Below, one piece after another: positions 33,470 through 36,690 of a stretch of DNA of 64,000 nucleotides; position 1 is the stretch's first letter, and each line of letters begins with the position of its first letter. The notes under the pieces are model-generated. The model saw only the letters and a program-made list of their open reading frames with translations, did no database searches and was not told the DNA's origin. Source of the DNA: Schmidtea nova (Eukaryota); assembly GCA_044892505.1 (NCBI GenBank), contig CM097882.1, positions 16,678,001-16,742,000 on the forward strand, given 5' to 3'. Both the position numbers and the translations under genes were made by a program.

Positions 33470-33950
33470 TCAACCTTCAGTTACTTAAACACATTCAAAA
33501 TATCCGTGGAATGGGCAACTTGATCATTTATTTTTAGATTTAAATATCTAATCATCAATGCCTCACAAGTTACTCGTTCTCAATAATTACTTAAACCTTT
33601 TGAAACAATTTTAAAATCAGAGATACCTATTTTTTTAATGACACATTTCCTAAAATGATCACTAATATTAGACAATCCTTTTTGTCGGCAATGCTCAAGA
33701 ACTCGGGTGCAGAGATGACGGGCAGTCTCTCCAATGGATGTGGCATTACATCTATTACATGACAATTGATACTCGAGCTCAGAACACAAACCAATTGGCG
33801 TTTGACATTTACTAGTGAACACATTACAATTTTCATGTAATGGGTGTAATGCCACATACATTGGAGAGACTCCCCGTCATCTCTGCACCCGAGTTCTTGA
33901 GCATTGCCTACAAAAAGGACTGACTAATATTAGTGATTTTTTTAAGATTT
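33470..33950. pseudogene. PLE GIY-YIG fragment with an internal inversion (minus 33470-33820, plus 33820-33950)
   Basis: The same ATYIGETARHL block is read on both strands; junction falls in the hairpin CATTAC-AATTTTCAT-GTAATG. Confidence 0.8.
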
Positions 33951-34358
33951 GCACTGGGNNNNNNNNNNNNNNNNNNNNNNNNNNNNNNNNNNNNNNNNNN
34001 NNNNNNNNNNNNNNNNNNNNNNNNNNNNNNNNNNNNNNNNNNNNNNNNNNNNNNNNNNNNNNNNNNNNNNNNNNNNNNNNNNNNNNNNNNNNNNNNNNNN
34101 NNNNNNNNNNNNNNNNNNNNNNNNNNNNNNNNNNNNNNNNNNNNNNNNNNNNNNNNNNNNNNNNNNNNNNNNNNNNNNNNNNNNNNNTAAAATAATAAAT
34201 AAATAATATAATTAATATAATATTAGTACAAACTTGGATCTAAAATTAAGTTTTGTAAGGTCAAAATGAAAAGAAAACAAGAATTAATGTAAAATCAAAA
34301 AACATAAAGTAAGCTGACCATAGATACAATACATGCGGCCTTTTTGTTACTGGTCAAG

Positions 34359-34366
34359 TATAAAAG
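34359..34366 (+). promoter_or_regulatory. TATA box of the secreted peptide gene
   Basis: TATAAAAG about 30 bp upstream of the ATG at 34391. Confidence 0.6.
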
Positions 34367-34390
34367 CAGCAGCAAATTTGTTATAATTTA

Positions 34391-34697
34391 ATGATGAAAC
34401 TGTTTCTACTTATTCTCGGCCTAGTTGCGATTAGTGAGGTTTTCGGTGCTCCGCTGCTGGAGGATAATGATCTGAAAACAATTAACGTCGAAAGTACCTT
34501 TTGGTTCTCTGTTTAATATTATTATTATTTTCATTAGATTTGGAAGAAAAATTTACCGAGGAAGAAAGTATGAAAACTTAAAATTGTATAATAATAGTTC
34601 AAAATTATCACTAGATGAACAAGAATATGAAAAGAAGAGGAGATGCTTCAGAATTTGCTATAAGAACAAAGTCTGTGTCATACGTTGCGTAGGATAA
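34391..34697 (+). CDS. Three-exon secreted precursor (71 aa) of a putative tachyplesin/gomesin-like beta-hairpin antimicrobial peptide
   Basis: Exons 34391-34493, 34538-34567, 34615-34697; phase-1 GT-AG introns of 44 and 47 nt; MMKLFLLILGLVAISEVFG-APLLEDNDLKTINVENLEEKFTEEENEQEYE-KKRR-CFRICYKNKVCVIRCVG*; AATAAA at 34706. Confidence 0.85.
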
Positions 34698-35064
34698 TTT
34701 GATTAAATAAAATTTGTAATTTGCTTCATTTTTTTATTAGAAACATTTTTAAGAGAAATAAAATAATTATTTATACAAATAATATTATAATTACAAAACT
34801 TAAATACTATCATTATTGCTTTGATATGCAGTCCAATGATTAAAATAGCAATTCGGAAATTTGAAGGAAAAATTTGTGAAAATTTGTATAAAATTTTTAC
34901 TGACATTTAAGAAATTTCTATTTTGAAAAAAATTAAATGAAATTTGTTGAAATCTTATTTTTGGTCATTGGATTAAAAAATGTTTGTTTGAATAATAATT
35001 AAAAGAAGTGAAGAAAATTTAAAAATTCATTGTAGTTAAATAAAAATTGAATTAAAGAAAACTT

Positions 35065-36690
35065 ATGACTTTTCATTTCCCGAATGGTACGATTGATACT
35101 TTCGTTGCGGCTAACATAGCGACCACGTCTTCAGAAATCTTTCTTGGACAATTGATACCGAAAAAGTTCAGAAAAGGAGATGATGTCGACAAATTTATTG
35201 AAGAATGCGAAACGTTTTTCAGTTTGCGACTTTTACAGGTTTCAAACAATAAATAATAGTAAGTTCCCTGTTAGATGATGACCTCAGAAAGAAATATAAA
35301 AGCATCGACCCAAAAATCAAATGCTACAAAGAGAGAATGAGGACGGCATTTAAAACGGAAACAAAAGTATTACAAGATATCAAAGCAGCACTGGCATACA
35401 AGCAAACAAACGAACAACCCGAAAGGTATTTCGAGATAATAGACAGGATGGTTAATAAAATCTTTGAACGAGAATGGATAAAAGAAGATCTGAAGGAGAA
35501 ACTCTTAATAGAATGCTCAGATGTGAGAGAGTTAAAAATGAATAGACCAGATAAAAGAGAAAATCACAAGGTTACACGAGATTCATAAGATGACAGAGGA
35601 AATTATGGCCATAGAAAGAAGTAGACGAGAATCAGGAAATGTAAGAAGTTACAGAGATGCAGCCAGAACGAAGAACAATTTTACACAGAGACCATATATG
35701 TAAACAAGGCAATACTTTAAACCGAAAGTAAGAAGAGATTATGAGAATCAACAAAACAAGAGAGAGATGGAATGTTGGACTTTTCACCAAGTAGGTCATT
35801 TAAGCCGAGACTGCCCAAAGAAGTTGATTGCATGCTTCGGTTGCGGAAAATAGGGACATTTCAGAAGAGAATGCCCAAATATAAGATGCAGATGCAATAG
35901 AAATTGATAGAAAGAAGCTCAGTGTTACACAAATTTAAACCGAAAAGAAACAAGAAGATTAAATTCGAATGAACAGAATCAAAGAAATGAAGGATATCAA
36001 GGAAAAAGTTGATATCAGAAATATGTAGAACAAGGAGGAATGAAAAGAGAATCAAGGGGAACCAGAGAATGATTTGTAGCAAATATCGAGGATAAGTTTT
36101 CAGAAAATGGAGAATTTGAAAATCGAAGATACCCAAACGAGAATGCTCTAACAGAAGAGGAGATAGTCGGAGCGATATATTAGATAATTGGAAAAACTCC
36201 CACATTTTGAATTATTATAGTATAAGTAGTATATTACCTATTATATAGAACACAGTAGAGAGTGAGCTAACAAATGAGGAAACGGTATGCACAGCAAATA
36301 AAGTAAACATATTTTTGAAGAAGGATTGGAGAATCGGTAAAAGTAAAGGGAATATGACTGATGAAAGAATAGATATTATGGCTTTAGTTGAACAGAAACA
36401 GAATATAATAAGATATGACAGAATGCATGGCCGACAAAGTGTAACAATCGAGATCAATGGATAAGTCATGGAAAGTTTATTGAATACCGGAGCAAGTATT
36501 AATATTATGAGCTGGAAATAATGTCAGAGATTACGAGGGATTGAGTTGACAAGGACAGCAATAACACTTCGGTGTGCAAACGATGGAAAATTAGAAATAA
36601 AAGGCAGTGCAGAAATGAAAGTCAATTTGAATGGTATGGAGAGAGAAATACAGTTCACAATAGTAGAACAACTACCACAAGTTAAATACA
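35065..36690 (+). pseudogene. Ty3/gypsy gag-protease remnant
   Basis: Capsid-like KGDDVDKFIEECETFF; two decayed CCHC knuckles (C....Q.GHLSRDCP, CFGCGK.GHFRRECP); protease LLNTGASINIM; many stops. Confidence 0.85.

Follow-up and report, generated by a model that had tools for sequence, protein, structure and literature searches.

Does a stretch of flatworm DNA contain a gene, absent from the list of its open reading frames, for a disulfide-bonded defence peptide? We addressed this question for 64,000 nucleotides (nt) of the Schmidtea nova genome (contig CM097882.1, positions 16,678,001 to 16,742,000), here called the window, in which three short exons between positions 34391 and 34697 had been read as a hidden gene. 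The original prediction was a precursor of a cationic, amidated antimicrobial beta-hairpin, nearly identical in part to tachyplesin and without known relatives in this lineage. We found that the gene is real, intact and protein-coding, with the features of a secreted prepropeptide, and that it belongs to a large paralogous family with a fixed cysteine framework, a predicted hairpin fold and a hypervariable mature region.

The gene lies on the forward strand. A TATA box (TATAAAA, 34359..34365) is found 32 nt 5' of the ATG. Exon 1 (103 nt, 34391..34493) begins with this ATG at 34391, ends in phase 1, and covers the signal peptide together with the first part of the propiece. Positions 34391-34447 encode the signal peptide, MMKLFLLILGLVAISEVFG, which carries Val at -3 and Gly at -1; its cleavage site was placed by the -3/-1 rule rather than by a predictor. 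Intron 1 (44 nt, 34494..34537, GTACCT...CATTAG) and intron 2 (47 nt, 34568..34614, GTATGA...CACTAG) are both of the GT..AG type and in phase 1. They enclose a symmetric 30-nt micro-exon (34538..34567) that encodes LEEKFTEEE of the acidic propiece plus split flanking codons. Exon 3 (83 nt including the TAA, 34615..34697) supplies in its first part (34615..34643) the propiece end NEQEYE and KKRR (34632-34643), and in its second part (34644..34697) the mature peptide CFRICYKNKVCVIRCV (34644-34691), a Gly codon (34692-34694) and the TAA (34695-34697). An AATAAA polyadenylation signal (34706..34711) begins 9 nt past the stop codon. All of these elements, from the TATA box to the polyadenylation signal, lie exactly where they had been predicted.

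When the exons were joined by script, the spliced coding sequence of 216 nt yielded a precursor of 71 amino acids (aa), MMKLFLLILGLVAISEVFGAPLLEDNDLKTINVENLEEKFTEEENEQEYEKKRRCFRICYKNKVCVIRCVG, in which the signal peptide is followed by an acidic propiece (net charge about -10), KKRR and CFRICYKNKVCVIRCV-G. The predicted order of acidic propiece, basic cleavage site and C-terminal cationic four-cysteine peptide ending in Gly is thus present in the spliced translation. The mature peptide (CFRICYKNKVCVIRCVG) has the spacing C-x3-C-x5-C-x3-C, and its side chains carry a charge of +4, which amidation would raise to about +5. The six-frame list of open reading frames (ORFs) for 30-40 kb does not show the gene because no exon exceeds 103 nt, and standard ORF and gene tracks miss such genes, in which each exon is about 100 nt or shorter. 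The window has a G+C content of 20-37% per 2-kb block, mostly below 30%.

Further evidence for the gene model comes from its paralogues. The genome has 1.25 Gb; its three chromosome-scale contigs measure 612, 456 and 161 Mb. A DNA search of this genome with the window gene returned 27 matches, of which two are full-length sister copies of 96% identity (C1:8.25 Mb and C1:8.59 Mb) and many others cover exon 1 only; positions 34402G, 34408A, 34417C and 34555A distinguish the window copy from these sisters. With the 34-aa translation of exon 1 as a protein query, we recovered 62 loci on all three chromosomes, with tandem arrays at C1:10.08-10.11, C2:263-266, C2:279.5-280.7, C2:359-362, C2:390.17-390.28 and C3:53-54 Mb. 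Enumeration of splice models on the fetched loci identified about 45 intact copies, which encode 32 distinct precursors of 68-77 aa.

These copies share a common architecture. Exon 1 measures 100 or 103 nt, ends in phase 1 and is followed by a GT..AG intron, the position of which is kept in all intact paralogues. Exon 2 has 24, 27, 30, 33 or 57 nt, always a multiple of 3; intron 2 has 47-52 nt and is GT..AG in every intact paralogue; and exon 3 is short. A TATAAA precedes the ATG by 32-35 nt at 26 of 29 distinct loci, and at 23 of the 29 an A[AT]TAAA lies no more than 90 nt past the stop. The signal peptide and propiece follow the pattern MK[LS]FLL..GLVA..EVFG[AST]P ... NLEE ... EQ.., with the cleavage motif VFG-AP maintained family-wide as [VAI]FG followed by A, S or T, and all but one of the 32 distinct precursors (31/32) have a di- to tetrabasic site directly before the Cys-containing peptide. 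Recurrence of the same phase-1/phase-1 model at about 45 loci takes the window gene far beyond a chance ORF and bears out the proposal of a hidden short-exon gene for a secreted prepropeptide. It also removes the notion of a lone oddity: the gene is one of at least 60 loci, and a member from S. mediterranea was already in GenBank under an uninformative name.

That protein, X1.C4.1 (GenBank AHD24730.1, UniProt V9XMQ9, 76 aa), was found at 58% identity and an expect value (E) of 8e-10 in a word-indexed search of 5.8 billion proteins, and pairwise BLASTP against the window precursor gave E 5e-23. The alignment runs unbroken through INVE-NLEE at junction 1 and into NEQE..YEKK after junction 2, with its sole gap inside exon 2. 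X1.C4.1 is presumably derived from complementary DNA (the GenBank record, as seen, is silent on this), and if so its alignment across both junctions gives independent support to both. It matches the window precursor in having a signal peptide (MKLFLLILGLVA..EVFGAP), the segments INVENLEE and NEQE.YEKK within an acidic propiece, and a basic site after which a cationic peptide with four Cys (ICRRVCYSKYKCKCA) forms the C-terminus. It departs from the window precursor in its Cys spacing of 3-5-1, the lack of a terminal Gly and a longer propiece. Its best exon-1 match in the S. nova genome reaches 67-74% identity. Judged by this alignment, X1.C4.1 is a true homologue of the window gene. A protein search had been suggested along with the original prediction; it did find a relative, the function of which is undescribed.

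Beyond this homologue, an exhaustive phmmer search through 1.84 billion cluster representatives brought up no relative other than planarian-type sequences. The only addition was P0002 (MetaClust UPI00060C6BCA, 109 aa), in which a signal peptide and propiece of the family type are joined to another C-terminal half. We set it aside as probably a gene-prediction chimera with a transposon, because this C-terminal half matches about 1000 transposon-like loci in the genome, inside long open frames of up to 3401 aa (L084-L087). Pfam searches with three precursors at E up to 10 returned only sub-threshold noise (DncV-like, DUF29), and the precursors therefore contain neither a BRICHOS nor a cathelin domain.

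In the searchable literature the name X1.C4.1 appears in no paper, the diagnostic peptide strings have no relevant match, and combining gomesin or tachyplesin with planarian or flatworm retrieves no description of such a family. Supplements of two eLife papers on the epidermal lineage contain neither the name X1.C4.1 nor the conserved coding motif. The similarly named X1.C3.3 is a 'late progeny' marker of the epidermal lineage (bioRxiv 10.1101/179986). The X1.C names hint at a neoblast/progeny expression screen and possibly at the epidermal lineage for X1.C4.1, which we treat as a lead and not as evidence. Other small secreted families of the planarian epidermal lineage, prog and zpuf, have about 100 aa with coiled coils and repeats, and by these descriptions they are set apart from the window family. 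Planarian immunity reviews and a 2026 paper present only generic or differently built 'predicted AMPs' (antimicrobial peptides) of 100-250 aa with charged repeats, and a 2019 review of worm antimicrobial peptides nowhere mentions flatworms. The expectation that no such family was known in this lineage held for flatworms in this literature. The large family to which the window gene belongs, one of secreted peptides with four Cys and a predicted hairpin, is specific to planarians and apparently undescribed.

The mature peptides of this family vary around a fixed framework. When 29 exon-3 translations were aligned, no column was invariant except those of the four cysteines. Most members have the spacing C-x3-C-x4-C-x3-C (for example, IRCWRVCNGRRCYIRCIKT, CKRYCHHRKCYIRCKHYHKKI, CNRICMRGGCRTVCR and IPCYPVCKNGKCEVRCG). 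The C-x3-C-x5-C-x3-C spacing of the window peptide is found in its own subfamily and in one C2 copy (L032), and the arrays at C3:53 Mb and C2:390 Mb encode C-x3-C-x3-C-x3-C peptides such as ANCRVSCIPVCHPICN. Loops between the second and third Cys are rich in turn formers, with a central Asn-Gly or a terminal Gly and, in three-residue loops, Pro (KNGK, RNGF, LNGN, NGRR, xRGG and [IV]P[FVR]).

We modelled the fold with AlphaFold2, using the family alignment and the literal window translation of 34599-34694, which gives a model of 32 residues. A short propiece helix is followed by strands at residues 15-20 and 26-31 with the loop YKNKV between them; the mean predicted local distance difference test (pLDDT) score is 79.9, rising to 91 over residues 21-30. 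In the predicted register, Cys1 lies opposite Cys4 (C16/C30) and Cys2 opposite Cys3 (C20/C26). The beta-hairpin of the original prediction is thus also what the model predicts. A helical CX3C...CX3C hairpin of the alpha-hairpinin or kappa-hefutoxin type was considered and ruled out, because a loop of 3-5 residues cannot hold a helix-turn-helix and because strands are predicted.

Divergence within the tandem arrays is concentrated in the segment that encodes this peptide. Across the 12 copies of the C2:279.5-280.7 Mb array, the mean pairwise difference per site is 0.000 in exon 1, 0.005 in intron 1, 0.018 in intron 2, 0.015 in the 3' flank and 0.180 in the 45-nt mature region. Across the five copies at C2:263-266 Mb it is 0 in exon 1 and in intron 1 and 0.209 in the 45-nt mature region. 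Divergence in the mature region of the arrays is therefore 10-40 times that of exon 1 and intron 1. Variable columns are distributed accordingly, with 22/45 in the mature region versus 3/122 in intron 1 for the first array (p 3e-12) and 19/45 versus 0/122 for the second (p 5e-13). A conserved prepro region, a hypervariable mature peptide and fixed cysteines form the pattern of conotoxins and of many antimicrobial-peptide families, and this pattern argues for products aimed at external, changing targets.

Such targets could also be prey or predators, with the peptides serving as toxins or deterrents that act as ion-channel or receptor ligands in mucus or glands. Venom peptides classically come from multigene arrays of this kind, in which the prepro region is kept and the mature region is hypervariable, and planarians are predators that use secretions. 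Many family members are of low charge (0 to +2) or hydrophobic, and the family profile weakly touches segments of scorpion K+-channel toxins (BmTX1/2, E ~7). However, the window gene and several subfamilies encode strongly cationic peptides (+4 to +8) with alternating basic and hydrophobic residues as in membrane-active hairpins, the best look-alikes are antimicrobial peptides and not toxins, and a toxin preprint holds no planarian toxin of this form. We consider a toxin role unlikely, although it ranks next after the antimicrobial reading.

For the window peptide we infer the following route. The signal peptide would be cut off after VFG, and the acidic propiece (net about -10) would accompany the peptide through the secretory pathway until a proprotein convertase cleaves after KKRR. 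The C-terminal Gly would probably become an amide. The product, CFRICYKNKVCVIRCV-NH2 (about +5), would then form a beta-hairpin held together by two disulfides, which presumably pair C1-C4 and C2-C3. Cationic members, including the window peptide, may be membrane-active and antimicrobial, acting in the manner of tachyplesin, gomesin and capitellacin from an independent origin. We put at about an even chance the reading that these genes evolved independently as a family of secreted hairpin peptides for defence, with an antimicrobial role as the most likely function.

The same processing signals would serve an endogenous signalling peptide, hormone-, neuropeptide- or cytokine-like, processed by prohormone convertase and amidated. 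A dibasic cleavage site and a C-terminal Gly are the standard prohormone signature, and it has been suggested that planarian peptides of the antimicrobial type might be long-range danger signals (PMC13563047). The Gly is present in the window precursor, as an amidation donor should be, and in 7 of the 32 distinct precursors; it is not kept across the family. About 45 intact copies with hypervariable mature sequences also fit poorly with a ligand matched to a receptor. We therefore regard a signalling role as very unlikely.

Several observations weigh against the antimicrobial reading. The ratio of nonsynonymous to synonymous differences (pN/pS) in the mature region is only 0.8-1.55, invariant Cys codons included, and synonymous differences are also raised; the hypervariability could therefore come from mosaic gene conversion that homogenizes everything outside the mature region as well as from diversifying selection. 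Net charge across the 32 precursors ranges from 0 to +8 for the mature peptide (median +3.5) and from -2 to -11 for the propiece (mean -7.3), and the two are related at rho -0.35 (p 0.047, not corrected for relatedness). We do not count charge compensation as support because the correlation is weak and confounded by relatedness. Neutral or hydrophobic members, such as FCVTICAPFGCFRHCF and ANCRVSCIPVCHPICN, fit toxins or signalling peptides equally well. The predicted cationic character therefore stands for the window copy and cannot be assumed, any more than an antimicrobial action, for the whole family. AlphaFold predictions for very short disulfide peptides are only indicative, and the similarities to known hairpin antimicrobial peptides are all statistically non-significant (E 0.097-0.37).

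Further points of this kind concern the expression of the window copy. Four public sequencing runs, all from one study, contain the locus. They are DNA-type libraries with Tn5/Nextera adapters, in which many of the aligned contigs come from the 96%-identical paralogues; their contigs cross both introns without splice joints and are uninformative on expression. The donor of intron 1 is GTACCT in the window copy, where most paralogues have GTATTT or GTATGA. We also observed a motif about 15-20 nt 5' of the TATA box, (G)ACCTTTC followed by TAAT or ATTAG, that is kept among the diverged chromosome-1 subfamilies (L002, L003, L005, L009-L013) and is changed to GGCCTTTTTGTTAC in the window copy (34325-34358). 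This motif is possibly a cis-element specific to the family, and regulation may differ in the window copy. With its atypical donor and diverged upstream motif, the window copy could be weakly expressed.

An extreme version of this argument is that the window copy is a silent or decaying duplicate beside transposon debris and that only other members are expressed. Besides the donor and the upstream motif, this is suggested by the many visibly broken copies in the family, by the position of the locus between an assembly gap and high-copy repeats, and by the public runs, which are of DNA type only and provide no RNA evidence. Yet the window copy has kept an intact frame, TATA box and polyadenylation signal and both pairs of splice sites, and its exon 3 is the same as in the two sisters (0/83 differences) despite differences at 8-9 of 91 intron positions (~9%). 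The identity of exon 3 fits either purifying selection on the window peptide or a recent gene conversion of exon 3. We consider a silent window copy quite unlikely.

The flanks of the gene contain repetitive material. At 33580-33958 of the window, an N gap is bordered by two ORF fragments, of which one is on the minus strand (33580-33861) and the other on the plus strand (from 33815). Both encode C-N-x-C-N-A-T-[SY]-I-G-E-T-x-R-H-L-C-T-R-V-L-E-H-C, a motif that recalls, by eye, the GIY-YIG nuclease of Penelope-like elements and has no match in Pfam. On the other side, at 34803-35400, the contig depth summed over the four DNA-type runs rises abruptly, from tens or hundreds into the thousands, just downstream of the gene, and a high-copy repeat therefore begins about 100 nt past the polyadenylation signal. 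ORFs at 35065-35588 have no Pfam match.

Elsewhere in the family, copies are broken by stops in exon 2, by insertions resembling miniature inverted-repeat transposable elements (MITEs) or expansions of an ATT microsatellite in an intron, by loss of Cys or by reduction to an orphan exon 3. Together, intact and broken copies make up the usual birth-and-death picture of a multigene family. Two otherwise intact-looking copies have lost one Cys (L036, C2:266.40 Mb; L067, C2:117.42 Mb), and two others have an in-frame stop at the exon 1/2 join or in exon 2 (L070, C2:359.97 Mb; L012, C1:11.59 Mb); such copies represent ongoing decay within arrays. The same short inverted-repeat (MITE-like) element, which contains ...TCATAATGACTATAGATCAAAA...CACAATATTTCGGCACAGCCTTTATCAAGTGTGT..., sits inside introns of L004/L022 (C1:9.59 Mb), L045 (C3:53.10 Mb) and L073 (C2:362.44 Mb), and all three host copies appear broken. 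A decayed orphan exon 3 (..KKTCFRICYKNKVCVTHCTGKFD and a stop; L015:1540-1610, C1:8256936-8257058) lies 2.2 kb downstream of the intact sister at C1:8.25 Mb, and no recognizable exon 1 or exon 2 was found at this site. In the four copies of the C1:10.08-10.11 Mb array (L005-L008), the promoter and exon 1 are 97% identical in nucleotide sequence to window positions 34351-34495. This likeness ends at the intron-1 donor (GTGAGA versus GTACCT in the window) and is followed by an ATT-microsatellite intron of 300-350 nt and by unrelated exons 2 and 3 that encode FCVTIC[AT]PFGCFRHCF. Either exon-1 shuffling or a gene conversion that stopped at the splice site seems to lie behind this pattern.

Planarians are a leading model of regeneration and increasingly one of innate immunity, and their secreted antimicrobial effectors are poorly defined. 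We tentatively propose, at well under an even chance, that this superfamily of about 45-60 planarian hairpin genes, with a 45-nt region that diversifies focally (at synonymous sites too), is the missing Cys-stabilized antimicrobial arm of flatworm surface immunity. Focal diversification would point to targeted mutation or mosaic gene conversion, as debated for conotoxins, and the peptides may be loaded into secretory vesicles of the epidermal lineage, as the 'X1.C' naming hints. If the proposal is true, about 30 natural variants on a minimal two-disulfide scaffold would be concrete effector candidates for planarian immunity and a ready-made natural library for structure-activity work on hairpins. 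It would further mean a fourth or fifth independent origin of a tachyplesin-like hairpin and so a clean case of convergent evolution, and tandem arrays with near-identical introns would offer a compact system in which to study the origin of mature-peptide hypervariability.

How does the family compare with the hairpin peptides that it resembles? We searched PDB sequences of chains of at least 20 aa, a set that excludes tachyplesin and gomesin themselves. The window peptide had a sole match, the polyphemusin-1 entry 2b5k (E 0.097 over 18 residues), and the top matches of the family profile were capitellacin (7ald, E 0.13), the arenicin-3 analogue AA139 and alvinellacin. A Foldseek search of PDB with the 32-residue model found nothing significant; capitellacin came third, at 53% identity across 19 columns and a root-mean-square deviation of 1.5 A. 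The predicted likeness to two-disulfide hairpin antimicrobial peptides is therefore real in pattern, where polyphemusin, capitellacin and the arenicin-3 analogue are the closest matches in PDB, and in predicted fold, and non-significant as homology. What had been called near identity to tachyplesin comes down to a short compositional resemblance (E 0.097-0.13).

The tachyplesins, polyphemusins and gomesin are cationic hairpins with C-terminal amidation. They have the C-x3-C-x4-C-x3-C framework in common with most paralogues and a CFR[IV]CY-like motif in common with the window peptide, which is likewise cationic and is presumed to be amidated. The shared framework and motif are what speaks for true homology, by descent or horizontal transfer, with the chelicerate peptides. 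The spacing of the window peptide differs, with a loop of five residues (3-5-3, not 3-4-3), and the phmmer and PDB results given above also stand against homology. The precursors differ as well. That of tachyplesin is said, after Shigenaga et al. 1990, to have the same order as those of the gomesin type. Gomesin-type precursors are encoded by two exons; their signal peptide is followed by the mature peptide, an amidation site and, at the C-terminal end, an acidic tail about 40 residues long (PMC11678162). The window precursor, encoded by three exons, reverses this order, with signal peptide, acidic propiece, basic site and mature peptide. We regard homology with the chelicerate peptides as effectively refuted.

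Closer in layout are capitellacin, arenicin-3 and alvinellacin, two-disulfide cationic hairpins that, as in the window family, lie at the C-terminal end of the precursor. Capitellacin (VCIRVCRNGVCYRRC) has the 3-4-3 spacing and the NG turn seen in many paralogues. These annelid peptides lie behind a BRICHOS domain (PMC6780910), whereas the planarian precursors have about 70 aa and no Pfam domain, and the similarity is limited to E 0.13-4. Protegrins also combine a signal peptide, an anionic pro-region and a C-terminal two-disulfide cationic hairpin freed by proteolysis, here behind a cathelin domain (PMC4410394). Their cathelin pro-domain has about 100 aa, in contrast to a planarian propiece of about 31-41 aa without a cathelin match, and protegrins have another Cys spacing and are vertebrate-specific. 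Conotoxin-type and amphibian skin-peptide superfamilies, in which tandemly duplicated genes likewise keep the signal and pro region and vary the mature peptide around fixed cysteines, resemble the family in evolutionary mode only, with unrelated sequences, folds and taxa. In the micro-exon genes of schistosomes, the coding sequence is made of many consecutive symmetric micro-exons of about 6-36 nt; in the window family a single symmetric exon (24-57 nt) lies between a first and a last exon of the ordinary kind, and by its exon structure the family does not belong to this class. The differing organization of the precursors argues against common descent with the gomesin, annelid or protegrin peptides. 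The likeness to tachyplesin and gomesin is convergent, and the window peptide probably acts in the manner of hairpins of the tachyplesin or capitellacin type without being a member of either family.

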